Part shown: in pieces, positions 172 through 64,000 of the stretch
How the letters are laid out: every line of letters starts with the position of its first letter
How positions within the stretch are numbered: the stretch's first letter is position 1
Source: Paraphysomonas bandaiensis
Taxonomy: Eukaryota; Protista; Chrysophyceae
DNA: 64,000 bases
NCBI GenBank assembly: GCA_965644295.1
Contig: CBFFRP010000078.1
Coordinates: forward strand, 124,001-188,000
Direction of reading: 5' to 3'
Notes under the pieces: model-generated
Databases searched by the model: none
The model's input: the letters and a program-made list of their open reading frames with translations, nothing else
What the model was told of the DNA's origin: nothing
Translations under genes and position numbers: made by a program

Positions 172-702
172 TCACAAACTATTTTCAGGGGCATCCAATA
201 CATATTCAGATTCTATAATATCAACACAATTAGAATCAGATGCGGTATTTAAACTACAGAAATTGTCAGAACTCAATTCTTCGGTGGGTTTCAATATTTC
301 ATAACGGGGCGAGGGTGACACTATTTTTTCTTGGAGATTGTTTGGCCGCGCCGAAAACATATTACCAAAGGAAAGCATCAAAAGGGAAAGTAGTCGCAGT
401 CTCTTCGCTACGATATACAGCACTACAGCAAAGAAAAAAACTAATGAGCCCAACAGACTGTATTTTTCCCATATTTCTGCGTTCTTTAAAGAACTGAGAC
501 GCTTTTTACTAGATCCAAGTGCCCCTTTAAGATGATATGAATGTTCCTGTAATGTATCCTTAATAAGATCTCCATCTCTCGTTAGATGATTGACTGCATT
601 TTCTGATCCATGTAATGTCCGCTCAATCACAACTCTTGTGCGTTGAAGGGATTCAGTAACTCCTCTGGCACTCTTAACAGTGTTATTCGATGTAGATGGC
701 AT
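172..702 (-). CDS. SEC20: Sec20/BNIP1-family SNARE (short form)
   Basis: VTESLQRTR...L..SKKRLSSL...FFFAVVLYIVAKR matches the Sec20 SNARE helix followed by a TM segment; single ORF of 176 aa. Confidence 0.7.
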   Translation of the reverse strand: MPSTSNNTVKSARGVTESLQRTRVVIERTLHGSENAVNHLTRDGDLIKDTLQEHSYHLKGALGSSKKRLSSLKNAEIWEKYSLLGSLVFFFAVVLYIVAKRLRLLSLLMLSFGNMFSARPNNLQEKIVSPSPRYEILKPTEELSSDNFCSLNTASDSNCVDIIESEYVLDAPENSL

Positions 703-1100
703 GGAGTAGGGAATATATACGATTCAATCCAACAATTGTAGAGTGAATTAAATATATCTTCACATGTGCCTGATGTGTGAGGAGGGTATATACTAAAGTA
801 TTATATACAGTAGTCCACATCATACAGACTCAGCAGTGTAGGCATATATACGTCATATTCCAATTGTAGAGCTGGAAAAGAGGTACTCTGCACTGTATAC
901 CAACCTACTGTACTTTGTTGTATGGTGTAACTATATACTTCTGCATTCTAATCGTTGATTGGTCAATTTCATTTTGGTGCAGTGTCTCTTCAAGATATCT
1001 CTCGCCTGTTCAAGATTTCATAGTTACGGTGGCAGTTGCAACGCTTTGCAACATCTTTTGTAATCAAATAGACACCAAAATCACAAACATCAAAGTGATC

Positions 1101-3233
1101 ATGATGAAAACTGCGTTAATTACAGCATTGGCTGCCAATGCCGCCAGCATTGTTAATGCCGAGTGTGCAAATGCATGCAATGGGCACGGAAGTTGCACCA
1201 GTTATGATATGTGCGATTGCAACCGAAACTGGCAGGCTAATGACTGTTCAGAGCGTGTGTGCCAGTTTGGTCTTGCACACGTGGATACCCCAAAGGGAGA
1301 TTTGAACCACGATAATGTCATTGAAGGCCCTGACAATATCATTGTTGAGAATGCCTTTAAGTATCCTTTTGGAACCACTGAGCAGTTTCCCCGCATGCAG
1401 GATTCGGATCTTGCTGACCTCGAGAATTCAGCCCACTACTACATGGAATGCTCTAATAAGGGAACCTGTAACAGAGAAACTGGTACTTGTGAGTGCTTTC
1501 CTGGATATGACGGTGCAGCATGTCAGCGTGCTTCTTGCCCTGGATACCCAGAGTCCTGCTCTGGGCATGGTGTTTGCAAAACCATTCGCCAGTTGGCCAA
1601 TGCCGATTACGGCAATATTTACGAGCTTTGGGACAGAGATGTAACAATGGGGTGTGAGTGTGACAAGGGATTTTATGGTCCTGACTGCTCTTTGAGAGAG
1701 TGCAAGTATGAGATCGACCCTCTATACTATGATGATACCGCTACTATTAAATATTCTGTCTTCGACTTCGCCATCCTCACCACTGGAAGTCTGCAGACAG
1801 ATTTCACCAATGGTATGTCTGATTCTAGCACAGCTTACTGGGCGATCAAGTTCTATGATATGCACGGTGAGGACTGGACTACTAGACCTATTCCTGAGGG
1901 AGCTCAGTGCGCCGAGGTCTTGGATGCCCTGGCTGACCTTCCCAATGATGTTATCCCTAGAATGGATTCCACATGGTGCACGAGAACTGCCAGGGACAAT
2001 GCTGAGAGTCTTGATGGTGGTTTCGATAGCACTGATGCACTTACCTATGATACTGCTCGTCCTATTGCATACCCTCTTGGATTCTGGCTTGCCGATGGTG
2101 TCACACGCAACACAACCTCATTTGATAACGTAGAGGCTCCTGAATTCTCTGGTTACATATACCGCATTCACTTCAACAACAACCCAGGAAAACTTAGACA
2201 ACCTGAGATCGATATCTATCTTGATGGTAAGCGCCCCACTCTCAGCTCAGATCCCGAAAACACTGACGAGATCGTCACGCGTGTGTGGACCGACGGACAG
2301 CAGGGTGAGAACATTGATTACTTCGGCGACCACTGCGATGGTGTCACTGTTACACTGGACTTTACTGATGGAACTGGAACTGTCCTCGCTGGTCTTGATG
2401 CTACTGAGACCGCACTTCTTAAGGCATGTCTCGGAACCTCTGATTTTGATCCCAATAACAATGTTGAGATCTACGACTGGGACCATGGTAGCGAGATGTA
2501 TCCCCATCTTATCAAGCTTGTCCTTTCAGTGACCAGCTCAGCTGATGGAGGGTACTACGCTGCATTATACTACGACGGAACTAACTTTAACCTCCTTAAT
2601 CCCATCCGCGGTCCTGATCAGGACGAGAGTGACATGTTCGAGGTGTACACGACTAAGGGTGTGCTCGCTCGTACGTCCAACAAGACCGAGGCACACTTTG
2701 GATTCGCTTCTCAGGAAATTGTCATGACTAACACAACCTGGGAGTACCATGAGGGTAGGGTATCTTTCGATGGTGATGTTTCTTGCGAGGTCAATGATAA
2801 CAACCGTTACAAGCTTGAGTACATTGACCACTGCTTGAACAAGTCTGATATCATTACTTTCCTTACTTTTGACGATCTCTCCCGTAACCCTCCTCACATT
2901 AACCTTTACACTGTTGAGAAGATCTGGACGAAGCAGTACCAGGCCAACTCTACTGATACCTTCCCCACTCTTGCCAAGGACGTCCATCAACGATTTGGTA
3001 CTCACGTCATCGAGACCGACCTCTCAACTAACTGGGCTGCTGATAATGCCATCGAGCCAAACAACCCTCTGAACTTTAACATCTACAAGTTCTTCCCTGA
3101 TGAGACAAGCAACTACGAGTATGTCGCACAGTGCTCCAATAGAGGAATCTGCAACACTGATGAGGGATTGTGTGAGTGCTTTTCTGGCTACACTGGTGAT
3201 GCTTGCCAGACTCAAGCCAGCCTAGCTGTGTAA
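1101..3233 (+). CDS. Tubular mastigoneme protein (Ocm1/Sig1 family, EGF-like repeats)
   Basis: Signal peptide MMKTALITALAANAASIVNA; then ECANACNGHG, CQFGLAHVDTPKGDL, AHYYMECSNKGTCNRETGTCECFPGYDGAACQRASCP; C-terminal YEYVAQCSNRGICN..CECFSGYTGDAC. First in-frame ATG is at 1101; intronless. Confidence 0.9.
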   Translation: MMKTALITALAANAASIVNAECANACNGHGSCTSYDMCDCNRNWQANDCSERVCQFGLAHVDTPKGDLNHDNVIEGPDNIIVENAFKYPFGTTEQFPRMQDSDLADLENSAHYYMECSNKGTCNRETGTCECFPGYDGAACQRASCPGYPESCSGHGVCKTIRQLANADYGNIYELWDRDVTMGCECDKGFYGPDCSLRECKYEIDPLYYDDTATIKYSVFDFAILTTGSLQTDFTNGMSDSSTAYWAIKFYDMHGEDWTTRPIPEGAQCAEVLDALADLPNDVIPRMDSTWCTRTARDNAESLDGGFDSTDALTYDTARPIAYPLGFWLADGVTRNTTSFDNVEAPEFSGYIYRIHFNNNPGKLRQPEIDIYLDGKRPTLSSDPENTDEIVTRVWTDGQQGENIDYFGDHCDGVTVTLDFTDGTGTVLAGLDATETALLKACLGTSDFDPNNNVEIYDWDHGSEMYPHLIKLVLSVTSSADGGYYAALYYDGTNFNLLNPIRGPDQDESDMFEVYTTKGVLARTSNKTEAHFGFASQEIVMTNTTWEYHEGRVSFDGDVSCEVNDNNRYKLEYIDHCLNKSDIITFLTFDDLSRNPPHINLYTVEKIWTKQYQANSTDTFPTLAKDVHQRFGTHVIETDLSTNWAADNAIEPNNPLNFNIYKFFPDETSNYEYVAQCSNRGICNTDEGLCECFSGYTGDACQTQASLAV

Positions 3234-3473
3234 ATCCTTGCTTTCGTATTATCTCATTGAATTTTCATGGTGTCTGGTGAAAAATAGCAACAAATAATAA
3301 TCATCCTTATATTATTTACTATTTTATATTTTACTTTTGGACCGTCGAAACGTGTAAGATATAACTCATAGCATTTCGACTATGAAAGAATTATTTTTCC
3401 TTTTCTATGTAGAATTCAGTTCTATATTCTGAGTTTCTTTATTTGTGTATTTTCCTGTTTTGGTACCTAGATA

Positions 3474-3656
3474 TATTGAAAGTCTTGTTATTTAGCAGTA
3501 GGCGTTGAAAGCCGGCACCCATTAGTGGCTAGTGGAATGCTAGTCATACTAGTTAGACTACTACCCGTAACTAATCAATGCAAACTCTTTTATCCTACTA
3601 TTTGACGCTACAGAAGCTACTTGTGCGACGCCGCAAGCACCAAGGTGCAACCACTT
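3474..3656 (+). repeat. Dispersed repeat family 1 (other copies ~4405-4481 and ~30878-31003)
   Basis: TATTGAAAGTCTT..TTAGCA.TAGGCGTT.AAA is shared with 4405; AAGCT(A/G)CTTGTGCGAC(G/A)CCGCAAGCA....GTGCAACCACTT is shared with 30959-31002. Confidence 0.7.
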
Positions 3657-4543
3657 CCGTTCTTTTGTGAGTATAAATTAATTCGCCATTAACGTGGACC
3701 CTGGACTCACTGGCGCATGGTACCTAGAACGTAGTCAAGCTACTCAAGCAGTACGTTTTTAAAATTTAGTTTTCAGTTATAGGTTTTAGTGTTACACTTG
3801 TTTTGAATTCGCCAAAAAGTTAAATCAATCTTAATTCACATGCACCAAGTAGTATTGGATTACAAAACACTTTGTGATTTTTGAAGTCTTTCAAATTTGC
3901 ATAGATATTTATTATATTATATATCTTTTTTAATAATCTTTAGCTGTTTTCAAGTTTGTTGTCTTGAAGAATACACACGCATCCGGGATTGGGCCGACCT
4001 CAAAGGCTTCCTGCTGAAGTCCAGCATGCAGGCTGTTCATATTAATCTGGTACTACTACATAGTATGCCCTGCTGCAACTATGCGATTTATGACGTTATG
4101 ATTTATTTCATTCATGTCAACCACTGCTCAACTTCTGTATCTTGATTAGTCATGACGCAATAATTCAGTTTCACAGTTATAGCTATATAGTATCTTTGAT
4201 TACTGACGACATGTTACTGTTTTTCACATTGTATTGTATAGTACTATCTTAAAGAAAACATATGTAATATGTAGTAATGGTAATTCCATTATAATTACCG
4301 GGAACTGGACTACCATTAATGGGTCATTAATGGCTAGTAGGCCCTGTTATACAGTATACAGTACAATGCTTATTAACCATATATTCAAATTAATTATCAG
4401 CGCTTATTGAAAGTCTTATTATTAGCAATAGGCGTTAAAATCTGCACCAACTTAGTAGCTAGATGAATGCTAGACAAACTATATTGTATACCCTAGATAG
4501 TTTAATATATAATCAAGCATGAATTTATTTTAGAAATGCTTAA

Positions 4544-5887
4544 TTACAATGGCTTGTTAATATCCGCGAACGCCACATTGAACTGCTTCTTTTTTCTCTC
4601 TTCCTCTAATAGCACCGTTCGTACTACCTCCGCCCGACCCTTCAGTATTTCATTCACAGAACGCACGCAATCCGCTAGTTGTGTCGCAACGTTTAGTTCG
4701 GCGTTTACAGAAGTAGTTATAACATGCGGATACAAGGCATGCAAGCGTGATACAAGGTAGCTAATGTACACTGAACTTCCTGGAGCTGTTAAAAGCTTGT
4801 CTGCTGTCACCACATCTTCATTGCGGTCAGAAGAAGGTGTATCCACTTCCTGATGACAGATTGGACACTCCCTGCCCTTGGAGGTCACCAAGCTCTGTAT
4901 GCAGTTCATGCAGTAGATATGGTGGCATCGCAGTTTCATTGGTATCCTACGCGCTCTTCCTATTGATGGTGATGCAGAATCCATGTATTCAACATCTTTG
5001 GTGTTAATGAAGCTGGACAACTCATCTTCTAGTTTCATATCGATATCCGTATTATCAGCGGTAGTGTCCACCACCTCATTACTCTCATCCTTGATATTAC
5101 TCGTGCTTGATGATTCTTCAAATGGGTCAAGGCACATTGGACAACATATAATGCCTTTGCTTGTCTCCAGGGTTTTAATCACTCGCCTAAGTGCAGCGTA
5201 GCCCTTCTTGACATTTTTATCTTGCTTACTGCTCACAAGAGCACATATCGCGAGGCTGAGAAAGAGTACCCCCAGCACCCACGGCCCCACCTTCAGCGCC
5301 ACATACCGTCGCTTGTCGACTTTTTTCTGTGCATTTGTGGTTTCTGTTGGGCCTCTAGCAATTAGCATATTTAGTTCGTTCATTGCCATTTCAATAGCTG
5401 GTCCATAATCTCCAGACTTCAAGTGGGGGACCATATGAGAAGCTACTTGATTGACCTCAATACTGGAGAGTTTATCCTGAATTCCAGCGCCAAGAGAAAT
5501 GTGTACCACACGATCAGATATGGAAAGAAACACAAGAACCCCATTGCGCATAGGAGAGTCACCTACTCCCCATGTCTCTAAAAGGGTATCCGCATATCTC
5601 TCAGCATCAGCGTTTACAGATGATGTGAATGAGCGTACCATTGATGGAATAACCACAACTGCAAACTCAACATCCCAAATTGAAGTAGCGAATTGTTCTA
5701 TATCATTCTTAGCTTCAACTGGAATTAGTTCAGCAATATCACATATCATTGACCGTTCAACCCCTCGTCTTCCACACATATCAGGTTGTTTCATAGGGTT
5801 CGGTATATCTGCTATATCAATAGAGTATACCGTATCGCTATTCACATATAAAATGCATAAGAAGATAATAAATAGAATACCCTGCAT
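4544..5887 (-). CDS. Signal peptide + TPM (TLP18.3/Psb32/MOLO-1) domain + TM + C3HC4 RING finger protein
   Basis: IPNPMKQPDMCGRRG..SMICD (MOLO-1-like start); WGVGDSPMRNGVLVFLSISDR (TPM); TM WVLGVLFLSLAICALV; RING CPMCLDPF...LRCHHIYCMNCI...CPICH. Confidence 0.8.
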   Translation of the reverse strand: MQGILFIIFLCILYVNSDTVYSIDIADIPNPMKQPDMCGRRGVERSMICDIAELIPVEAKNDIEQFATSIWDVEFAVVVIPSMVRSFTSSVNADAERYADTLLETWGVGDSPMRNGVLVFLSISDRVVHISLGAGIQDKLSSIEVNQVASHMVPHLKSGDYGPAIEMAMNELNMLIARGPTETTNAQKKVDKRRYVALKVGPWVLGVLFLSLAICALVSSKQDKNVKKGYAALRRVIKTLETSKGIICCPMCLDPFEESSSTSNIKDESNEVVDTTADNTDIDMKLEDELSSFINTKDVEYMDSASPSIGRARRIPMKLRCHHIYCMNCIQSLVTSKGRECPICHQEVDTPSSDRNEDVVTADKLLTAPGSSVYISYLVSRLHALYPHVITTSVNAELNVATQLADCVRSVNEILKGRAEVVRTVLLEEERKKKQFNVAFADINKPL

Positions 5888-6508
5888 TAGATCAATGATC
5901 TTTTATAGACAGAGAACGTTATATATATAGAACACGAACACTGATAGCTCTATAGCATCTAGCTTTAACTATATAAGACTTATGGACACGTATATGTATG
6001 TACTCTGTATCTGCTGTATACAAGCACAATGGGCAAATGCAGAAACTGAAAGATGTATCTGTATCACACGTCTTGGATCTCTTGTACATCTCCTACTGAT
6101 GATGATATCCCTAAAAAATGCCAACATATACTCATTTCAAATTTTCATGACCAGAAACACGCTTCGGAAACTGATAAACGAACCAAAAATTCACAATTTT
6201 TAGATCTATATATACAGCAGTATATACACCATATTTCATGTCCACCACAAGTTGTTTCCTGCTGCTACTGATTTCGTCATAGGTACACTATATACTGTAT
6301 ATATTGCCTATATATATCCCACATATGGTATATTACTATCTATTGATCGCCAACAACATACGCATACACTACAAGCAATATCAGTTTAGTTTTTTTTGGT
6401 ATGTTGTGAGTATGTTGGTTGCTTATATTGCTATATATGCATAGTATTATCATGCTTTAACTACGACGTCATGACTTCTATTTAGTTATTGCACAACTCA
6501 ATTGAGTA

Positions 6509-9500
6509 ATGGAGGTTGGCGTTGCTGTGTGGGTGAAAGGTAGTGGGACCTATGAGGGCTGGTTACCTGGCACTGTATGTAGCAAGGTAGTATTATTATA
6601 TTAATAGTAACTCATGTTTATAATCTATTCCTATATAGGAGTCAGATAAGATTACTGTTCGTATAGATGACTCTACTGAAGAATTAATATTCCCGTAAGT
6701 TCAAATGAATGTCTGCATAGAGAGAATCGATAACATCTTTATGTTCATTTATTATCTGCAGTGTCAAAGAAGATAACGATGATTTGAACGATGTTAAACT
6801 TCGTAATGATCCGAATGAAGTGGATGTCGACAATTTAATAAATCTACCTTACCTCCATGAGCCAGCAATACTGTACTGCTTGGAGAATCGCTATGCTGAA
6901 AGTGATATATATACGTATACTGGCCCCATTCTCATCGCCGTGAATCCATTTAAACGGGTTCCACTGTACACTTCCCAGATTCTAGAGATGTATTATAACC
7001 TGGGGTTATTGAAATCTCAGGGTATTGAGAACGCAAGTCCGTTGCCGCCGCATGTTTACGCAATTGCCGATGCGGCCTACCGTGATATGATGGCAGTGAT
7101 ACTCAACGGGAGCGGGGCAAGTGGTGTATCTTCAGCCGATCAGGCAATTCTTATCAGTGGAGAGAGTGGAGCGGTTAGTATATACACATCTGTTTACTTC
7201 ATAAGCACATATCGTTTTATGAATAATTTTCTCGCAAACTCTTTATGACAGCTCTATATTTGTTTAATTATTTACACTCGTATTCGAACTTTTAATAATT
7301 TTTTTCATTATAGGGGAAAACCGAGTCCACAAAAATTGTGCTCCGCTATTTGACTACTGTGGGCAGTTCCACCGGGTCTGTGGATATCCAATCCGGATCC
7401 ATCATGGACAAAGTGTTACAGTCAAATCCCATCCTCGAGGCCTTCGGAAATGCGAAAACCATTCGGAACGACAACTCTTCTCGATTTGGAAAATTTATAG
7501 AGCTCAATTTTTCTCGAAGAGGCCACTTAATCGGTGGGACAATTCGCACATATCTCCTAGAGAAGGTTCGTCTGCCTTTCCAGCAAGTTGGTGAGCGAAA
7601 CTTTCATATATTTTACCAAATGCTCGCGGGGGGGACATTTGAGGAGCGACAAAAATGGAGGGTAGAGAATATAGAAGATTTATATTACGTCAACCAGGGA
7701 GGAGTGTTTGAGCTACAGTGGGTTGACGATAACGAGGAATTCCACGATATGAAAAAAGCACTTCGTGTGCTAGGGTTTGAGGAGGAGTTCCAGGTGTCGT
7801 TGCTGAATGTGATGGCTGGTCTACTGCACCTGGGGCAGCTACGGTTTGTTGCGGATGAAGATGGAGAAGGCTCAGAGCTAGCCGACGACCCGGCTGTCAC
7901 ATCTAGTCTAGAAGCAGTTGCGGACCTGTGTGGTGTCCCAGTGGATGCTCTCAAGCATGCGATTACAATCCGCATTATTACTGCGCGAAATGAAACGTAT
8001 GAGAAAAAACTTACTCCAGGACAGGCATCTGATGCTAGAGATGCCCTCGCGAAAGCACTGTATGGAAAGATATTCGACTGGATAGTCGCCACCATTAATC
8101 GATCCATACAGGTCGAGAAAAAACAAGTAAGAGCGGACATCGGAGTTCTAGATATATTTGGCTTCGAGTGCTTCAAGCTGAACTCGTTTGAGCAGTTGTG
8201 CATTAACTATACAAATGAGACACTGCAGCAGCAATTTAATCAGTTCGTTTTTAAAATGGAACAGGCTGAGTATCAGAAGGAAAAGATTGAGTGGAGTTTT
8301 ATAGAATTCCCTGATAACCAAGACTGTCTTGATTTGATAGAGCACAAGCAAACTGGTATTATTGCCATGCTGGACGATGAATGTCGATTACCGAAAGCTA
8401 GTGATGACAAATTTCACTCCCGTTTGGTGAAGTCTATGGACAGCCATGGAAGATTCTCATGTACTGCTGCTCAGAAAAGAAATGGCGATTTCTGTGTTAA
8501 CCACTATGCCGGTCCCGTTGTATACAGTACTGCTTCTTTCGTCGAGAAAAATAAGGACGAATTTCCTCGTGAGGCAACTTCTCTTTGCCAGGGTTCCAGC
8601 GATCCTCTTATCAGTCATATTTTCAATCAGAACTCTCCACCGAAGGGAAAACAGCCAGATACCATCCCACGTTCACAGTCAGGTCGCGTGCAAGCTTTGA
8701 GTGTTGGGTCACAGTTTCGAGAACAGTTGCATTCACTCATGGACAAGATTTATACGACCAAGCCGCATTATATCCGTTGCTTGAAGCCGAATGACCAGAA
8801 CGTGCCAGATTCGTTTGATAGGCTAAGAACCACAGAGCAACTGAGATATGGTGGTGTGCTCGAAGCAGTCCGAGTGGCAAGGTCTGGCTTCCCGGTGCGT
8901 CTATCTCATGTGGACTTCTTTGCCCGCTATCGTCCATTAGCCAATCCTTTCAGCCCATTAACGGCAACATTGCCACGGGTTCTTTCGCATGGAGTATCTA
9001 AGAATGCCCGCGGAGATGTAGAAGACGCGAAGGTGATGTGTGAGCGGCTTTTAACAGTATTGTGGGACGCAACTGTGCCAGGTGTGCATATTGGTGTATC
9101 CTTAAGTGTTATCTTACACGTGATTTTTTCTCTCGATGTACAGGAGAAGAAGAGGAGGAGGCCGTCACCGCTGCGAAAAAGAAGTCTGGAAAACCACAGC
9201 GCCGTTGTAGTCGTGTGGAAGACATGCTATCATGGAAGGGTAAAGGAGACATTGCAAGAGAAAGTGTCCAACTTGGCCTTACCAAAGTTTTTCTTCGAAA
9301 GGTTGCGCACGATATCCTTGAGGCGCGGCGCTCTCGACGACTTCTGAGTGCTGCGAATAAAATTCAGACTTGTTATCGCGGATACCTGCAGAGGTCCTGG
9401 TACTTGTCGTGTTTACGTTCCACACTCTTGGTGCAAAGGGTTTATAGAGGAATGATGGGGCGAATGAAAGCCCTGATGGTTCGACTCAACAAGGCCGCTT

Positions 9501-20397: not shown

Positions 20398-20627
20398 ATC
20401 TATTAATTAATATGAATTCAATGGAATGTATGGATTGTATGGATGATATGAAGGTATATATATGTAAGTGTGTTTCGGGGGGGTTTCTATATATAAGATA
20501 CTGTATGTATGATTTAATTAAAGGACTGCTGCATAGACATATGTGTGGTATACGGCTGTATATTGGCAGTGTTATTAGTTTGTATTTGAATGATTTCAGT
20601 TTTGAACACACAGCAACACCTGAAAGG

Positions 20628-21016
20628 TATACATACATACATACATACATACATACATACATACATACATACATACATACATACATACATACATACATAC
20701 ATACATACATACATACATACATACGTACATACATACATACATACATACATGCATACATACATACATACATACATACATACATACATACATACATACATAC
20801 ATACATACATACATACATACATACATACATACATACTACATACATACATACATACGTACATACATACATACATACATACATACATGCATACATACATACA
20901 TACATACATACATACATACATACATACATACATACATACATACATACATACATACATACATACATACATACATACATACATACATACATACATACATACA
21001 TACATACATACATACA

Positions 21017-21046
<30 letters not shown>
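20628..21046 (+). repeat. (TACA)n microsatellite, ~420 bp
   Basis: Read directly; it accounts for the spurious YIHT/MYVC ORFs in the track. Confidence 0.98.
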
Positions 21047-21048
<2 letters not shown>

Positions 21049-21205
21049 CTCTGCTCTTCTATACACGGAAATCATATCTGTATATACTCCTATGCATGCA
21101 TATATATATATATCATTGTCCGCTTGTGCCACTATACACACCACGACCAATATAACCCAATAAACCTTCATTTAAGCAGCTGAATAATCATTGCTTTCAG
21201 TGGGA

Positions 21206-22214
21206 ATGAATCTGGACACAACAAAGGTAATCTATATTCTAATTATTCATTATATTAAGATAATTCAATCTATTCATTAAGGTCCGGCCTATCCCATTAC
21301 AAGCCACACTTGTACTCGTTAATAATTTCATAATTAACACAACAAAATTTTTGAATAGTTTTTCGGAATCATGTGAAATAAAAATTGCGAAAGTTTCTGA
21401 AAAACTGAACGATCTTGAGGTGGTGTTGTCTGTATTAGAGGCAAAACTGAATTCCATTCCTGGTCTAGAGAGTCAACCTTCTGGTAATACTGAAGAAGCT
21501 AAAGAGGTACATGTTCCTGATGTACCCGATTCACATATATCAAATCCCGCGCCGGATATTGCTCAACCGGCAGTTGCACCTCCAGCAAATGTACGAAACA
21601 ATAACACGATCAAAGCTTCGGAGCACCCCGATTATGGAGAATTTTTTCGGCTTATTCGTTTGGGTGTTCCTGCACCTGTAGTCCAGGCAAAGGTTAGATC
21701 TGCTGGACTTGATCCTTCTGTATTAGATACGCCGGACGCTGAGTTGCCGATTGGTGGATCTGGTGTACCATTGTCTAGAAGAATATTCAACAAGTATGAT
21801 TCTGGGGGTTCCGGTTGTATAGGTGTCAAACAATTTCAACGCATGGCTGCCGATCATGGAGTTTGGCTTTCTGGAGAAGCCCTTGATCTTGCTATTAAAA
21901 TGATTGACCATGATGGCAATAACACCATTGAATATTCCGAATTCCTTAAGTGGTACCAGCAGTCAAGCTTTTCAAGTCTTTCATTAGATGATGATACTTT
22001 AGAAAGGCGTCATCAAGCTGCTACCTTATTTGCGAAATATGACGATGACAAATCTGGGGTTATCGATCGCTCAGAATTTGTTGGTCTTCATGCAGAGTTG
22101 AAGCTATCTGGACTAACTCAGCACAGCGTTGAAAAGGCCCTGGAAGATATGGATATGGATATGGATGGAAGTATCCAGTTTAATGAATTCGTCTTATGGC
22201 TTGAGCGGCATTAG
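21206..22214 (+). CDS. WASHC3: WASH complex subunit 3 (CCDC53) fused to a C-terminal calmodulin-like 4x EF-hand module
   Basis: MNLDTTK|VRPIPLQATLVLVNNFIINTTKFLNSFSESCE..LEAKLNSIPGL and HPDYGEFFRLIRLGVPAPVVQAKVRSAGLDPSVLDTPD are the two CCDC53 blocks; EF loops DSGGSGCIGVKQF, DHDGNNTIEYSEF, DDDKSGVIDRSEF, DMDMDGSIQFNEF. Confidence 0.88.
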
Positions 22215-40133: not shown

Positions 40134-40548
40134 AATTGATAATATAATCTGATTAAATTATATATATGTATATATTAATGAACAATTGACTGGAAAGACA
40201 CTGGGACAACAAGTACAATGCGCAGACACAATAATGTGTTAATGGCACGACTAGTAGACCAGTACAATCCTTTTAAAAAACAATGAATTTATCTTAATTA
40301 ATTATCGTACGTCCATTACTTTCATCAGTCGTATAATGAGTGTGTGTATATCAATCAATATGCTGATCCTGCCTATTGTACCTATCGTACCCTTGTCTAC
40401 TAAAAAACAGGCAAATTTCTAGAATGGATGACATGTCGTGGTGAAGGGAAGAAATATACTTTCTGTATATTTTTTTTGAATTTTCTGCAGCTACATGTTC
40501 TTAAAATCCATAGTTTTAATAGTGAAACTCAAGAAAAATTTATTACTA

Positions 40549-40737
40549 CTGTACGTTTCTGTCAACTTTTATCCACGCACTCGTTTTTCCACAAAAACAC
40601 TCTCTCCACACCCATTCCGACGACTCTCCAATTCTGACACGAGCATTCCACAAGCATTCCATTCTACCCCTGGTGGACTCAAATTATACCCACAACTCCA
40701 TTACACTGTACAATATGTAACAATATGGCTGCAGCTC
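40549..40737 (+). repeat. 189-bp terminal inverted repeat (4 copies: 40549-40737, 43732-43920, 44018-44206, 47200-47388)
   Basis: Identical from CTGTACGTTTC through ATGGCTGCAGCTC in all four copies, as read by eye. Confidence 0.95.
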
Positions 40738-41681
40738 CTGTATTGGATCTTTCTGAAGACTTCATTTATGATCATCCGGTGTTTCGAATTGATCACAGAC
40801 TTGTTGAGCATGAGCCTGTTGAGGCAGAGGAAGGAATATCACAACATGGTTTGTCTAGGCATCAATATACAGTATTGTTTTGGTACAAATGTTGTTTTAA
40901 GGATACCACTCTGCTTGAATGCGCAGAGTTTCTGAGAATTGTTTGCAACGTGACTGTGAGCCGATCCACAGTGTGCAGAGCACTCCTCCGACTTGGTTTC
41001 AAGAAAAAGCATATGAAGTACATCGCCAAGTATCTTGACGAGAATGATAGAGTGGCATTTTGGGTCAATCCGCCTGATCATTCACTGCGACCGGGTGTGC
41101 TTGGGGTTTATTATCGGGACATTGTGGACTTAGACGAAAGCGGCTTTTACGTCTCCAATTCACGGCGTGTCTGTGGTCACTCTCTTGGGAGCACCTCAAG
41201 CAGTTCTATTGGAAACAAAGCCCGCATGCTGCCCCACTACTCATTGCTAGTTGCTATCGACGCTCGCAAAGGTGTGATCAACAACATATTTTATCCACAT
41301 GGCACAACTTCGGAGGTATTCTACCACTTTGTTGTGTACCTGTTAATTCCCAGTCTTGAGGGTACTGGGAGACGTGTCATTACAATGGATCGCTTGAGTG
41401 CTCATTTTGGAGTTGTGGTCAAAGCTCTAACGGATGCTGGACATTATGTTGTCTTTCGTCCTGCTTCGTCCCCTACCTTTGCACCAGTGGAATGGGTATT
41501 CAGTTACGTGGACAAGTTTCTTCAAGAGCATAGTCCACAAGTCACGCCCAATTCATTAAAGTTTTGGTTAAGGACGGCTTTGGATACAATTAGTAGGTTT
41601 GACGTCAAACAGTATATGGCAGCTGCACACTTTTATGTCCCGACGTATCCGTACACACCTTACCGCGGTGAACAATCATAG
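40725..41681 (+). CDS. IS630/Tc1-like DD33E transposase, copy A
   Basis: HTH TLLECAEFL...VSRSTVCRALLRLGFKKK; catalytic IVDLDESGF, ITMDRLSAH, SSPTFAPVEWVF; 33 residues between the second D and E. Confidence 0.92.
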   Translation: MAAAPVLDLSEDFIYDHPVFRIDHRLVEHEPVEAEEGISQHGLSRHQYTVLFWYKCCFKDTTLLECAEFLRIVCNVTVSRSTVCRALLRLGFKKKHMKYIAKYLDENDRVAFWVNPPDHSLRPGVLGVYYRDIVDLDESGFYVSNSRRVCGHSLGSTSSSSIGNKARMLPHYSLLVAIDARKGVINNIFYPHGTTSEVFYHFVVYLLIPSLEGTGRRVITMDRLSAHFGVVVKALTDAGHYVVFRPASSPTFAPVEWVFSYVDKFLQEHSPQVTPNSLKFWLRTALDTISRFDVKQYMAAAHFYVPTYPYTPYRGEQS

Positions 41682-42202
41682 GGGTGCTATGTGGTTGTAG
41701 TGCACGTTGTGACTGCGCTGCACTTAGTATTTATTAATCTGGTTATTTATTCTTAACTATTCTAAATTATTATTCTTAAGTAATTTGGAACAGTATATTG
41801 CAATACCTTGCAAATGATATTAATCTGTTTAATATATTATTAGCTATATGTCGGTGGAATGCTTTTCACTTTTCACATTGTAATTACTAGTTTCATACGA
41901 AATTGAAAGCGCAGTGCTCACGGCAATAGTGATGAGAGTAAGCTTGTGTAATTTGGGCTCAAAATGAGTCCATTAAAAATTTGGGTGAATGTGTGATTAT
42001 TACACAGTTCTAGTGATGACATAATATGATTAATAATTAATACATTAATTAACAATAATAAAATTTATATAAAACTTCTTGACAACGATTGAATAATAAT
42101 AACAGCGAAAAGCAATAATAATAAAAGGCTATATCTGGAATCAGCAGGCTATAATAAGAAAACAAACTAATTTATAAAAAGAAAAGACACAATGCTAAGG
42201 GT

Positions 42203-43744
42203 CTACTCCGGGAAAGTGCCATCTGAAGTGGGCTCCAGCTTCAGCTCATTCAAATCATGAACTAAATCAGGCCTCAACACAACCACCACCGCATTGACAG
42301 CAGCCACACAACCTTTCAAGTCCATCTCTGTATCGTGACTGTACGCGTTATTTGGCGACAGTGGAGCCGACACTGGATGTAGCAGGGAAAAAATTCTGTC
42401 CGCAAGCCGCTTGTTTTCTGAGACACTGATGGTGAGGAGCCGTGCGATTGTTTCTTTGCAGTCCTCATATAACACCTGGGCCTCTCTTCCAATATTTAAA
42501 GCAACAAAGTGAGCGTACAACTGTTGTCTGAAGAATGTCAGGAAAGTCACAGTCTCCTCACGGGCCTGGAGTTCAACTGCACTCAGCTCAGGGGCACTGG
42601 TTGGAGCACAACCGTTCTCCTCCATGCGGCGTCTTTTGGCAGCCAACCCATCGTCTGCATTAGGAATGTCTGTAACTCCCTCCACATATTCCGGTGGAGC
42701 CGAAGCAACCGCGCGCACAGATGCGTCGTCCAGTGCCTTTCGTTGCTCCTCTGTTAATAGGCGCACAGCATTATGTCGGGAAATGGTTGCAATCAAAGAC
42801 TTAATCGGAACATCCATATCAATGGCCGCCTCAAGATTCTTCATGGTTTCAACTAATCGGTAGGTGGCATGGGGATGAAGTAAAAAAGATCGTTGGTCCG
42901 TCTGGTCTTTCTGGTGTTCTTCCCGAACTCTGGACATAACTGTATCTGATGCCCCGCAACGCTCAAGAAATCCAGGTGCTTGGCGCTCCAACTCTGACAG
43001 CACAATGTATCCATCCGGCTCTTGCAGGAGTTTATTCAAATGAATTAGAGCAAAGTTATTGACCTCAAAAGACGCTCTAGTGCTGTTCATTCGAGTCTGC
43101 TCGGCCAGTGCATTCATGTAAATCTGTCGCCGCTTCTTATCGTACTCCGAGATGACTTCAGCATGCTGTGGATACTTAGGGTAGGGACAATCCGACCACG
43201 GATCAGGCTGAATCCTAAACTCAACACTATGGGGCGCCACATTGCATACGGGACAGCTACACTTCACTTTAACAATTAAATCACAACCCTTGCACCTGCC
43301 CATTGGAGGTATGAATGTGGTGGCGTTGCTGATGGGACAGTCGTGCCTTAATGCTGCTTGCAACTCCGCACTCGACATGCACACAGGACAACGAGTGCAC
43401 TCCAAGCGATCATCTTTACTTGCTTTTTTCATCTCTGCGGCTTTGCAGTAGAACACGTCGTCCCTTTCTTCGTCATTTGTTATTGGTAGCCGTCGAACAT
43501 CTTTCTTTGCGCGCACGTGTTTCAGGAATCCCTTCCAGATGGTATAATGATGAAGACACCCAGGACACCTCACACCATCTTGTGGTGGATTTCTTGTGTT
43601 CGATTTGAACCTTTCCTGCCCACCGTGAAGTACGGTGTGTTCTGGAACAACATCGCGGAGTGATGGGAGGTGAGCGGCCACCAAATTCTCGGAAGGAGCA
43701 AACACGAATATATCGCCACCATCGTGGTGATGAGCTGCAGCCAT
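42203..43744 (-). CDS. Transposon-borne 513-aa Cys/His-rich protein of unknown function (ORF2), copy A intact
   Basis: Uninterrupted ORF starting inside the right TIR; CPGC-x12-H, CTRCPVC, CKGC-x7-CSCPVC; NLS-like AAKRRRM. Confidence 0.85.
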   Translation of the reverse strand: MAAAHHHDGGDIFVFAPSENLVAAHLPSLRDVVPEHTVLHGGQERFKSNTRNPPQDGVRCPGCLHHYTIWKGFLKHVRAKKDVRRLPITNDEERDDVFYCKAAEMKKASKDDRLECTRCPVCMSSAELQAALRHDCPISNATTFIPPMGRCKGCDLIVKVKCSCPVCNVAPHSVEFRIQPDPWSDCPYPKYPQHAEVISEYDKKRRQIYMNALAEQTRMNSTRASFEVNNFALIHLNKLLQEPDGYIVLSELERQAPGFLERCGASDTVMSRVREEHQKDQTDQRSFLLHPHATYRLVETMKNLEAAIDMDVPIKSLIATISRHNAVRLLTEEQRKALDDASVRAVASAPPEYVEGVTDIPNADDGLAAKRRRMEENGCAPTSAPELSAVELQAREETVTFLTFFRQQLYAHFVALNIGREAQVLYEDCKETIARLLTISVSENKRLADRIFSLLHPVSAPLSPNNAYSHDTEMDLKGCVAAVNAVVVVLRPDLVHDLNELKLEPTSDGTFPE

Positions 43745-44193
43745 ATTGTTACATATTGTACAGTGTAATGGAGTTGTGGGTATAATTTGAGTCCACCAGG
43801 GGTAGAATGGAATGCTTGTGGAATGCTCGTGTCAGAATTGGAGAGTCGTCGGAATGGGTGTGGAGAGAGTGTTTTTGTGGAAAAACGAGTGCGTGGATAA
43901 AAGTTGACAGAAACGTACAGTACTACTAGTAGTATCTAAAATACCTGGACACAAAATATAAATATGTACTTTTTCAAACTAGCGTCTTTTATTTCTGGGA
44001 CATTTATCTACTGTATACTGTACGTTTCTGTCAACTTTTATCCACGCACTCGTTTTTCCACAAAAACACTCTCTCCACACCCATTCCGACGACTCTCCAA
44101 TTCTGACACGAGCATTCCACAAGCATTCCATTCTACCCCTGGTGGACTCAAATTATACCCACAACTCCATTACACTGTACAATATGTAACAAT

Positions 44194-45734
44194 ATGGCTG
44201 CAGCTCATCACCACGATGGTGGCGATATATTCGTGTTTGCTCCTTCCGAGAATTTGGTGGCCGCTCACCTCCCATCACTCCGCGATGTTGTTCCAGAACA
44301 CACCGTACTTCACGGTGGGCAGGAAAGGTTCAAATCGAACACAAGAAATCCACCACAAGATGGTGTGAGGTGTCCTGGGTGTCTTCATCATTATACCATC
44401 TGGAAGGGATTCCTGAAACACGTGCGCGCAAAGAAAGATGTTCGACGGCTACCAATAACAAATGACGAAGAAAGGGACGACGTGTTCTACTGCAAAGCCG
44501 CAGAGATGAAAAAAGCAAGTAAAGATGATCGCTTGGAGTGCACTCGTTGTCCTGTGTGCATGTCGAGTGCGGAGTTGCAAGCAGCATTAAGGCACGACTG
44601 TCCCATCAGCAACGCCACCACATTCATACCTCCAATGGGCAGGTGCAAGGGTTGTGATTTAATTGTTAAAGTGAAGTGTAGCTGTCCCGTATGCAATGTG
44701 GCGCCCCATAGTGTTGAGTTTAGGATTCAGCCTGATCCGTGGTCGGATTGTCCCTACCCTAAGTATCCACAGCATGCTGAAGTCATCTCGGAGTACGATA
44801 AGAAGCGGCGACAGATTTACATGAATGCACTGGCCGAGCAGACTCGAATGAACAGCACTAGAGCGTCTTTTGAGGTCAATAACTTTGCTCTAATTCATTT
44901 GAATAAACTCCTGCAAGAGCCGGATGGATACATTGTGCTGTCAGAGTTGGAGCGCCAAGCACCTGGATTTCTTGAGCGTTGCGGGGCATCAGATACAGTT
45001 ATGTCCAGAGTTCGGGAAGAACACCAGAAAGACCAGACGGACCAACGATCTTTTTACTTCATCCCCATGCCACCTACCGATTAGTTGAAACCATGAAGAA
45101 TCTTGAGGCGGCCATTGATATGGATGTTCCGATTAAGTCTTTGATTGCAACCATTTCCCGACATAATGCTGTGCGCCTATTAACAGAGGAGCAACGAAAG
45201 GCACTGGACGACGCATCTGTGCGCGCGGTTGCTTCGGCTCCACCGGAATATGTGGAGGGAGTTACAGACATTCCTAATGCAGACGATGGGTTGGCTGCCA
45301 AAAGACGCCGCATGGAGGAGAACGGTTGTGCTCCAACCAGTGCCCCTGAGCTGAGTGCAGTTGAACTCCAGGCCCGTGAGGAGACTGTGACTTTCCTGAC
45401 ATTCTTCAGACAACAGTTGTACGCTCACTTTGTTGCTTTAAATATTGGAAGAGAGGCCCAGGTGTTATATGAGGACTGCAAAGAAACAATCGCACGGCTC
45501 CTCACCATCAGTGTCTCAGAAAACAAGCGGCTTGCGGACAGAATTTTTTCCCTGCTACATCCAGTGTCGGCTCCACTGTCGCCAAATAACGCGTACAGTC
45601 ACGATACAGAGATGGACTTGAAAGGTTGTGTGGCTGCTGTCAATGCGGTGGTGGTTGTGTTGAGGCCTGATTTAGTTCATGATTTGAATGAGCTGAAGCT
45701 GGAGCCCACTTCAGATGGCACTTTCCCGGAGTAG
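44194..45734 (+). pseudogene. ORF2 copy B, frameshifted by 1 nt (real mutation or sequencing error)
   Basis: T5 at 45051-45055 versus A6 at 42882-42887 in copy A splits the protein into track ORFs 44194-45084 and 44979-45734. Confidence 0.75.
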
Positions 45735-46255
45735 ACCCTTAGCATTGTGTCTTTTCTTTTTATAAATTAGTTTGTTTTCTTATTATAGCCTGCTGATTCC
45801 AGATATAGCCTTTTATTATTATTGCTTTTCGCTGTTATTATTATTCAATCGTTGTCAAGAAGTTTTATATAAATTTTATTATTGTTAATTAATGTATTAA
45901 TTATTAATCATATTATGTCATCACTAGAACTGTGTAATAATCACACATTCACCCAAATTTTTAATGGACTCATTTTGAGCCCAAATTACACAAGCTTACT
46001 CTCATCACTATTGCCGTGAGCACTGCGCTTTCAATTTCGTATGAAACTAGTAATTACAATGTGAAAAGTGAAAAGCATTCCACCGACATATAGCTAATAA
46101 TATATTAAACAGATTAATATCATTTGCAAGGTATTGCAATATACTGTTCCAAATTACTTAAGAATAATAATTTAGAATAGTTAAGAATAAATAACCAGAT
46201 TAATAAATACTAAGTGCAGCGCAGTCACAACGTGCACTACAACCACATAGCACCC

Positions 46256-47212
46256 CTATGATTGTTCACCGCGGTAAGGTGTGTACGGATACGTCGGGAC
46301 ATAAAAGTGTGCAGCTGCCATATACTGTTTGACGTCAAACCTACTAATTGTATCCAAAGCCGTCCTTAACCAAAACTTTAATGAATTGGGCGTGACTTGT
46401 GGACTATGCTCTTGAAGAAACTTGTCCACGTAACTGAATACCCATTCCACTGGTGCAAAGGTAGGGGACGAAGCAGGACGAAAGACAACATAATGTCCAG
46501 CATCCGTTAGAGCTTTGACCACAACTCCAAAATGAGCACTCAAGCGATCCATTGTAATGACACGTCTCCCAGTACCCTCAAGACTGGGAATTAACAGGTA
46601 CACAACAAAGTGGTAGAATACCTCCGAAGTTGTGCCATGTGGATAAAATATGTTGTTGATCACACCTTTGCGAGCGTCGATAGCAACTAGCAATGAGTAG
46701 TGGGGCAGCATGCGGGCTTTGTTTCCAATAGAACTGCTTGAGGTGCTCCCAAGAGAGTGACCACAGACACGCCGTGAATTGGAGACGTAAAAGCCGCTTT
46801 CGTCTAAGTCCACAATGTCCCGATAATAAACCCCAAGCACACCCGGTCGCAGTGAATGATCAGGCGGATTGACCCAAAATGCCACTCTATCATTCTCGTC
46901 AAGATACTTGGCGATGTACTTCATATGCTTTTTCTTGAAACCAAGTCGGAGGAGTGCTCTGCACACTGTGGATCGGCTCACAGTCACGTTGCAAACAATT
47001 CTCAGAAACTCTGCGCATTCAAGCAGAGTGGTATCCTTAAAACAACATTTGTACCAAAACAATACTGTATATTGATGCCTAGACAAACCATGTTGTGATA
47101 TTCCTTCCTCTGCCTCAACAGGCTCATGCTCAACAAGTCTGTGATCAATTCGAAACACCGGATGATCATAAATGAAGTCTTCAGAAAGATCCAATACAGG
47201 AGCTGCAGCCAT
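46256..47212 (-). CDS. IS630/Tc1-like DD33E transposase, copy B
   Basis: 318-aa translation identical to 40725-41681. Confidence 0.92.
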   Translation of the reverse strand: MAAAPVLDLSEDFIYDHPVFRIDHRLVEHEPVEAEEGISQHGLSRHQYTVLFWYKCCFKDTTLLECAEFLRIVCNVTVSRSTVCRALLRLGFKKKHMKYIAKYLDENDRVAFWVNPPDHSLRPGVLGVYYRDIVDLDESGFYVSNSRRVCGHSLGSTSSSSIGNKARMLPHYSLLVAIDARKGVINNIFYPHGTTSEVFYHFVVYLLIPSLEGTGRRVITMDRLSAHFGVVVKALTDAGHYVVFRPASSPTFAPVEWVFSYVDKFLQEHSPQVTPNSLKFWLRTALDTISRFDVKQYMAAAHFYVPTYPYTPYRGEQS

Positions 47213-47643
47213 ATTGTTACATATTGTACAGTGTAATGGAGTTGTGGGTATAATTTGAGTCCACCAGGGGTAGAATGGAATGCTTGTGGAATGCTCGTGT
47301 CAGAATTGGAGAGTCGTCGGAATGGGTGTGGAGAGAGTGTTTTTGTGGAAAAACGAGTGCGTGGATAAAAGTTGACAGAAACGTACAGTATACTGTACAT
47401 TTTCATGCTATACACTGTATATAGTATCTGTATACAGTGTATATTGCATTGTGGTATACATTGTATGGGGAGGGATACATTCGGTATATACTGTACATAT
47501 ATACACTGTATATATATATGTATGTAGCAGTGTGTTTACCATGATATCACTCATATACTATTACAGAACTATTCTATCACTAGAATTGAGCCTATAGAGA
47601 CCATCTCAATCATACTTACTCACTCAATAGATTTTATATCAAT

Positions 47644-63840: not shown

Positions 63841-63941
63841 GGGTACAGTAATAGACATATCACTCTATTTGAAACATCAGTCTCATGATCATCCACTTAG
63901 AAATGACTCAACTATATAGTGATATGTCTGATACTTCAATT

Positions 63942-64000
63942 TATGGATGGATGGATGTATGTATGGATGTATGTATGTATGTATGTATGTATGTATGTAT
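63942..64000 (+). repeat. (TGGA)/(TGTA)n microsatellite running off the window end
   Basis: Read directly. Confidence 0.92.

Follow-up and report, generated by a model that had tools for sequence, protein, structure and literature searches.

A two-gene IS630/Tc1/mariner transposon of a marine protist with the start codons of both genes inside its terminal inverted repeats

The IS630/Tc1/mariner elements form the most widespread superfamily of DNA transposons and are normally taken as a one-gene system. The Mutator element MuDR of maize has a MULE (Mutator-like element) transposase and a 9-bp target duplication. Two convergent genes encode the MuDR transposase and a second protein of unknown role, and inverted repeats of about 215 bp hold the transposase-binding site, the promoters and the start sites of both genes (PMC3440606). 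In Paramecium, all families of IS630/Tc1/mariner elements (Sardine, Thon, Anchois) have a conserved open reading frame 2 (ORF2) of unknown function (PMC5405496, PMC3464196). Mariner elements with Fanzor1, nuclease or methyltransferase genes occur in protists and giant viruses (PMC3627910). Here, we describe a transposon in a 64,000-nucleotide stretch of the Paraphysomonas bandaiensis genome (contig C78, positions 124001-188000; the window). It has a transposase gene (ORF1) and a partner gene (here also called ORF2) that converge, and both reading frames start inside the terminal inverted repeats. Coordinates are window positions unless a contig or a locus is named.

The complete element occupies 40549-43920 (3372 bp) and has TA on both flanks. 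We refer to it as copy A. The features of copy A and its neighbour are the following:

40547-40548: TA target-site duplication, left of copy A; TA flanks all seven copies with intact ends, and the sites differ
40549-40737, plus strand: left terminal inverted repeat of 189 nt with the tip CTGTACG..., the leader, a mini upstream open reading frame (mini-uORF), the ATG and 10 further ORF1 coding bases
40715-40720, plus strand: ATG-TAA start-stop mini-uORF on the ORF1 side, mirrored at 43749-43754 on the ORF2 side; within the RNA contigs
40725-41681, plus strand: ORF1, a DDE transposase of 318 aa (Pfam DDE_3)
41682-42202: AT-rich convergence spacer with both 3' ends inside; 12-nt and 7-nt insertions/deletions are polymorphic among the copies
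42203-43744, minus strand: ORF2, a partner protein of 513 aa, intact in 8 of the 10 copies
43732-43920, minus strand: right terminal inverted repeat of 189 nt with the leader, the mini-uORF, the ATG and 10 further ORF2 coding bases
43921-43922: TA target-site duplication, right of copy A
43923-44015: AT-rich host DNA of 93 bp that separates copies A and B
44016-47390, minus strand: copy B including its TAs; the element proper is 44018-47388

Each inverted arm (40547-40737 and 43732-43922) spans 191 nt, consisting of the TA and the 189-nt repeat, and the two are 100% complementary. The ATGs of ORF1 (40725, plus strand) and ORF2 (43744, minus strand) are both at position 177 of the 189 nt. The same 13 coding bases are therefore read in both arms, and both proteins start with MAAA. 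An ATG-TAA mini-uORF lies 4 nt upstream of each of the two ATGs and was retained in an old copy on contig C282 that has diverged by about 10%. The spacer between the genes (521 nt) has a GC content of 29%, as compared with 45% and 49% in the ORFs. The initial annotation, made from the DNA letters, had proposed that the repeats run 13 nt into coding sequence, that the left repeat starts the transposase and the right one the 513-aa frame, and that the genes meet at an AT-rich interval. Each of these features is present in the sequence and its observation is confirmed as real. A second MAAAH string near the C-terminus of the transposase was considered as a link to the shared start and rejected as a coincidence; it uses other codons and lies in a conserved transposase motif. 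The element carries only two ORFs of at least 120 aa, the DDE_3 transposase and ORF2, which has no Pfam family, so a tyrosine recombinase gene is unlikely.

ORF1 matched Pfam DDE_3 with 34.3 bits (E = 2.6e-8), above the curated cut-off of 28.6. In an alignment that took in marine-metagenome relatives of 36-73% identity, the candidate catalytic residues D137, D222 and E256 were found in invariant or nearly invariant columns. By our own count, 33 residues lie between D222 and E256, where 34 are expected for a DD34E transposase of the Tc1 type. No solved transposase was found that aligns to ORF1 by sequence. The Pfam search with ORF1 returned no helix-turn-helix family at E ≤ 1. Two relatives (P0007 and L038) have two weak helix-turn-helix regions each, and the segment that holds the first of them is missing from the N-terminus of ORF1 (40725-40790), which may leave ORF1 with a reduced DNA-binding domain. 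Conservation with the relatives does not extend to the transposase N-terminus. The DDE/D transposase of the IS630/Tc1 type, the TA duplication and the terminal inverted repeats together place the element in the IS630/Tc1/mariner superfamily. This agrees with the class proposed initially, for which DDE_3 and the TA duplications at 7 independent sites now speak.

The initial annotation had called for a survey of the genomic copies and their TA duplications. A DNA search of the 62.6-Mb assembly of 669 contigs returned 10 full-length copies of 99-100% identity on C78 (two), C32, C2, C388, C297, C185, C433 (two) and C259, and an older truncated copy on C282 with about 89% identity. All 7 copies with intact ends are flanked by TA on both sides, at unrelated sites that are often within (TACA)n microsatellites. 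That several copies elsewhere in the genome sit inside TACA/TGTA repeats suggests a preferred target. Long (ACAT)n microsatellites were also seen in the window at 20525-21300 and 63939-64000.

Copy B, which the initial annotation had missed, is inverted relative to copy A, lies 93 bp from it and has its own TA on both sides. Together the two copies form a near-palindrome of 6.8 kb. They are 100% complementary over the arms 40547-42886/45051-47390 and 42883-43922/44016-45055, and the sole difference is a run of A6 in copy A (42882-42887) that is A5 in copy B (45051-45055). This difference breaks ORF2 of copy B into a frame of 296 aa (44194-45084, plus strand) and a remainder; its ORF1 is at 46256-47212 (minus strand). 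The frameshift may have arisen by mutation or be an artefact of assembly at a homopolymer, the latter because a single homopolymer A is all that distinguishes the neighbouring copies.

The substitutions among the copies were then inspected for selection. In ORF1, 5 of 5 were synonymous and the protein was 100% identical in all 10 copies. ORF2 had 5 synonymous and 4 non-synonymous substitutions, two of the latter private to one copy, and was frameshifted in two copies. When both ORFs were pooled, 10 of 14 substitutions were synonymous, compared with 23% expected by chance (P = 1.5e-4). We conclude that the transposing lineages carried working versions of both genes.

The expression of both genes was analysed in assembled RNA contigs from four runs (X1, X2, X11 and X13), which were compared over 3616 bases and hold no information on strand, start sites or levels. 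Near-identical RNA was present in libraries of several independent marine studies and in runs of two organisms. In X2, a poly(A) metatranscriptome, exactly two contigs were found, one for each gene (40708-41742 and 42077-43761), and in X1 the corresponding contigs were 40708-41845 and 42158-43761. X11 and X13 covered both genes in part. The middle of the spacer was uncovered in X2, X1 and X11, and X13 extended to 41928. The outer repeat and the flanks were covered by none of the runs. These uncovered regions act as internal silent controls and show that the contigs derive from RNA rather than contaminating DNA. No splice joints were seen in the four runs, so both ORFs are unspliced as read. 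The ORF2 contig of X11 reaches 43778, which is 34 nt upstream of the ORF2 ATG, indicating an ORF2 leader of at least 34 nt that includes the mini-uORF; the 5' end of ORF1 is uncovered in X11. The contig ends at 40708 and 43761 were considered as start sites and rejected, since both are exactly 30 nt into the repeat in two runs. A break at 30 nt is explained by a k=31 assembly graph that meets sequence common to both transcripts. Transcription of ORF2, on which the initial proposal had been made to depend, is thus seen in contigs that cover the gene from 42077 to 43761 and, in X11, to 43778.

ORF2 consists of a Cys/His-rich N-terminal domain (about residues 55-180), a central helical region and a four-helix bundle at the C-terminus. 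The family has 12 invariant Cys/His residues from C116 to H172 and a conserved CPxC upstream, and this set would be enough for several predicted zinc sites. Further conserved motifs are YPKYP, DGYIVLAELER..PGFL, TI.RHNAVR.LT and the C-terminal helical bundle. The first 10 residues or so are not conserved, and the N-terminus is predicted to be disordered. The AlphaFold models of the whole protein and of the N-terminal domain were fairly confident, with mean predicted local distance difference test scores of 78.8 and 78.5, respectively. Residues 385-489 of the model matched an ACDC domain (Z 8.1) as a generic helix bundle, and the N-terminal domain reached Z ≤ 3.2 with zinc ribbons of the Dof, TFIIS and NrdR kind; neither match indicates a function. 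A feature search of the ESM Atlas with ORF2 gave nothing at or above 0.9. That ORF2 is a real second gene, as initially claimed, is borne out by its conservation, by its mostly synonymous change and by its presence in poly(A) RNA libraries.

Which part of the repeat is needed as a transposon end was approached through copies with insertions. In three of the full copies (two on C433, one on C259), a foreign insertion of 1.06-2.5 kb interrupts the repeat at position 43 and has duplicated TTTTTC. A solo end (C111:178366-178408) has the same insertion junction. If these insertion derivatives and the element on C58 that retains just the 43-nt tips (described below) spread by transposition, the outer 43 nt or so are sufficient as an end and the inner 145 nt or so are free for expression. 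This suggests that the outer part acts as the transposition end. We also looked for an inverted repeat/direct repeat structure like that of Sleeping Beauty, in which the tip sequence occurs again further into the repeat; the best match was 12 of 15 bases, which 19% of the shuffles equalled, and such a structure is not supported.

The inserted foreign element itself is 1059 or 2528 nt long and sits in the ORF1-side repeat, in L050 (C433:22000-30000) at 627-1728 and 5118-7688 and also on C259. It has no obvious inverted ends and has a GC-rich hairpin about 8 nt before one end; at a glance it is Helitron-like, with a poor fit. At locus L047 (C58:212800-219400; 518-6028), a TA-flanked derivative of 5.5 kb was found that has only the 43-nt transposon tips. 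About 843 nt of the foreign insertion lie inside each tip in inverted orientation, and it looks like a fold-back, non-autonomous offshoot.

We then compared the element with its relatives. In a sister family (L031/L051/L052), the transposase is 50% identical, the repeats are about 355-400 nt long, and the tip following the TA is CTGTGC... as compared with CTGTACG... here. The arms of L052 are 100% identical up to 92 nt past the ATG, and both frames share their first 30 residues, including a GKRK basic patch. This sharing of 30 codons is known from an in-frame internal-deletion derivative of ORF2, as present in L051 and L052, and not from a full-length ORF2. The derivative (L051 1-2108 and L052 1-1968; JGI Ga0233441/Ga0233442) was found in two samples and joins the 30 codons of the repeat in frame to roughly the last 176 residues of ORF2.

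Two other two-gene DDE_3 families of the same genome, L042 (C14:33500-43499, 2591-6069) and L045 (C249:6200-16199, 2332-6013), have perfect repeats of 200 and about 185 nt. The inner edge of these repeats is the A of an ATG or lies 11-27 nt short of the ATGs, and no relationship of the partner genes to ORF2 was detected (hhalign probability 0.5%). A GT...CAG stretch inside the L042 repeat could be a leader intron. In the L038/L040 clade, the same two genes have repeats of about 95 nt, and both ATGs are about 95-125 nt further in, in unique DNA. All these elements resemble the present one in a related DDE_3 transposase, a convergent partner, TA ends and a CTGT.C tip, and most families have long repeats with the inner edge at or over the start codons. 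They differ in the length of the repeats (about 95, 189, 200 or about 355-400 nt) and in the shared coding part (0, 13 or 92 nt).

The identity of the arms appears to be maintained by exchange. A mirrored substitution at repeat position 128 and element coordinate 3249 was found in both arms of the same 4 copies. A variant at position 166 (mirror 3211) is in the left arm in one copy and in the right arm in others. Both variants show that sequence passes between the arms. The old C282 copy has an unchanged leader, mini-uORF and ATG, and 5 of the 12 bases in the four codons that follow are different, as compared with about 10% further downstream; this fits an overwriting of the ORF1 start by the other arm. 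From these comparisons of sequence, it looks as if homogenisation of the arms has repeatedly pushed the identical tract up to and over the start codons. With homogenised arms, both genes share an identical upstream region, leader and start context. The four residues MAAA that both proteins have in common are unlikely to function as a peptide and are rather tolerated, because the N-termini of ORF2 and of the transposase are unconserved and one clade has its ATGs about 100 nt outside short repeats. The initial idea of a repeat that is at once transposon end and translation start thus holds in that both starts lie in the repeat and the design recurs in sister families; it is unlikely to extend to a function of the shared residues. 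The inward promoter and the matched expression of both genes, which the initial annotation also proposed, are putative.

Taken together, we consider it quite probable that the locus is an autonomous, recently active and young cut-and-paste transposon of the IS630/Tc1/mariner superfamily in a marine protist, with two genes, with repeats that double as ends and as shared upstream and start regions, and with ORF2 as a helper. The DDE transposase would cut the element out and paste it into TA sites. ORF2, from an orphan family that looks zinc-binding, would act in transposition as a helper or regulator supplied by the element itself, with nucleic-acid binding as its most probable activity. In each repeat, the outer 43 nt or so would form the transposition end, and the inner 145 nt or so would provide a common upstream region, the leader with the mini-uORF, the ATG and the first four codons of the facing gene. 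The repeat would also have promoter activity, placing both genes under one set of cis-control and start-context sequences. Inward transcription would produce two unspliced mRNAs that end in the AT-rich spacer. Exchange between the arms would keep them identical, and this identity would have crept into the coding sequence. The anatomy, the mobility, the conservation, the selection, the co-variation of the arms and the occurrence of both genes in poly(A) RNA libraries are seen in the data, and the promoter, the division of the repeat at 43 nt and the helper role are inferred.

Several observations weigh against this explanation. ORF2 had no Pfam family below E = 0.1, no match among the PDB sequences and no homologue in a word-index search. 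The fold searches with its whole model and with its N-terminal domain (Foldseek and VIA-align against the PDB; ESM Atlas) gave no informative match, and a predicted complex of the transposase with ORF2 provided evidence neither way. ORF2 is frameshifted in 2 of the 10 copies and ORF1 is kept in all 10. Derivatives that keep just the 43-nt tips could have formed at their present sites and not by transposition. Since the RNA contigs break 30 nt into the repeat for technical reasons, the promoter could sit outside the repeat, or the transcripts could start very near the ATG. Finally, the L038/L040 clade, with its ATGs outside the repeats, indicates that starts inside the repeat are dispensable for a two-gene element.

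The strongest alternative is that the overlap of repeat and start codons is a neutral by-product of gene conversion or repair, in which the identical tract spreads inward until selection on the two proteins stops it. In that case, the shared leader and start would not serve to couple the genes, and the four residues in common would simply be tolerated. We give this explanation somewhat less than an even chance. It is consistent with the inner edge of the repeats, which varies from about 100 nt before the ATGs (L038/L040) to 13 nt (present element) and 92 nt (L052) past them, and with the unconserved N-termini of both proteins, of which that of ORF2 is predicted to be disordered. The mirrored substitution is a trace of arm exchange, and compared with the old C282 copy the modern family appears to have had its start region overwritten. 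However, at least four families have the inner edge at their start codons or past them and not at arbitrary places, and the mini-uORF was kept in the C282 copy in spite of its divergence. Moreover, an identical upstream region and start context will control two genes alike, whatever the origin.

A far-reaching form of the two-gene explanation takes the repeat as a complete symmetric expression module with end, promoter, uORF leader and start, including the 30-residue shared peptide of the sister family. Conversion would keep the two arms identical, and this module would place the transposase under strictly common control with an essential cofactor that binds zinc and represents a new family and fold. 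We regard this form as tentative and rather unlikely.

A different possibility is that ORF2 is passenger cargo or a host-derived regulator, such as a captured zinc-finger gene, comparable to the Fanzor, nuclease and methyltransferase genes in Mariner. Multi-gene Mariner elements with captured genes are documented (PMC3627910), and the partner in the other two-gene families of this genome has no detectable ORF2 similarity (hhalign probability 0.5%). The 2 copies in which ORF2 is broken have an intact transposase. In addition, an intact paralogue of 546 aa with 40% identity (L034; C169:235000-244000, 3618-5258) is the sole other intact relative in the own genome. No end repeats were detected for this paralogue; a decayed convergent transposase remnant of 39 residues lies downstream, and it could be a relic or a domesticated copy.

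To follow the origin of ORF2, relatives were collected by an exhaustive search of 1.84 billion representative proteins, which returned just 29 at E ≤ 1e-3. Four foreign contigs were long enough to be informative (L031, L038, L040 and a contig of 3182 nt), and in all four a relative of ORF2 faces a related DDE_3 transposase in convergent orientation. In L031, the identity was 29% for ORF2 (E = 2e-24) and 50% for the transposase. The relatives always adjoin the transposase and have diverged together with it (transposase/ORF2 50%/29% and 36%/24%). A plain host gene homologous to ORF2 was not found in the own genome, where the other matches were only fragments ridden with stop codons. These results, together with the synonymous lean of the ORF2 substitutions, speak against cargo, which we judge improbable. 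In at least three diverged clades, ORF2 and the transposase have been passed on together, and we conclude that ORF2 is a long-standing component of the lineage and not a chance capture of a host gene here. The preferred explanation of a two-gene transposon with its own helper is retained.

That the repeat is a leader exon with an intron whose acceptor is at the inner edge, so that the repeat ATG is spliced out or used differently, is very improbable: although the inner edges end GCAG-like in the present element, L042 and L052 and a GT lies upstream in the arm, joints were seen in none of the 4 RNA runs, the contigs continue without a break from the coding sequence across the ATG and reach 17-34 nt beyond it on the upstream side, and both long ORFs begin exactly at the repeat ATG and do not need splicing.

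The autonomous two-gene transposon would thus add to the superfamily start codons that are encoded by the repeat, with up to 30 codons. It also defines a partner protein that is conserved, expressed and unlike any known domain or fold. This protein accompanies these transposases in marine protists and is a candidate for a new cofactor or regulator of transposition. As the element looks intact and active, with 10 near-identical copies, both genes in RNA and no introns, it lends itself to functional tests and might also become a genetic tool for the group to which its host belongs.

Among the known systems, Mariner elements of the Fanzor type are likewise flanked by TA and have extra genes beside the transposase. 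They differ in that the pairing of ORF2 and transposase in the present element is conserved across clades and not chimeric, and ORF2 is not of the TnpB/Fanzor type, since no Pfam family was matched. The ciliate elements (TBE1, Tec1/2 and those of Paramecium) belong to the same superfamily and combine a DDE transposase with an extra ORF. In contrast to the present element, they contain 2-4 ORFs, frequently including a tyrosine recombinase gene, and are confined to the germline, their repeats are about 22 nt or long and palindromic (425-700 bp), and start codons shared through the repeats have not been described for them. This distinction was drawn from the published descriptions. The initial annotation had named TBE and Tec as known multi-gene elements of the superfamily; for the layout, MuDR is the closer analogue.

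MuDR shares the convergent transposase and partner genes and the long repeats. Separate convergent RNA contigs were seen for the present element, and its repeat may contain the promoter. The differences from MuDR are the DDE_3 transposase with a 2-bp TA duplication instead of the MULE transposase with about 9 bp, the unrelated partner proteins, and the genes, which are spliced in MuDR and unspliced here. Neither a start codon nor coding bases in the repeat are described for MuDR in the literature found. The transposase and the TA duplication place the element outside MuDR/Mutator, and only the layout is similar. The initial annotation had also been aware of no IS630/Tc1/mariner element with N-termini shared through the repeats; in agreement with this, our literature search, which was not exhaustive, found no start codons or shared N-terminal codons inside Tc1/mariner repeats. 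The layout is thus new for the Tc1/IS630 superfamily as far as we found, while multi-gene Tc1/IS630 elements and the layout of the MuDR kind were already known. If our explanation is true, the logic of MuDR, in which a repeat is both the end and the control region of two inward genes, extends to the IS630/Tc1/mariner transposons.

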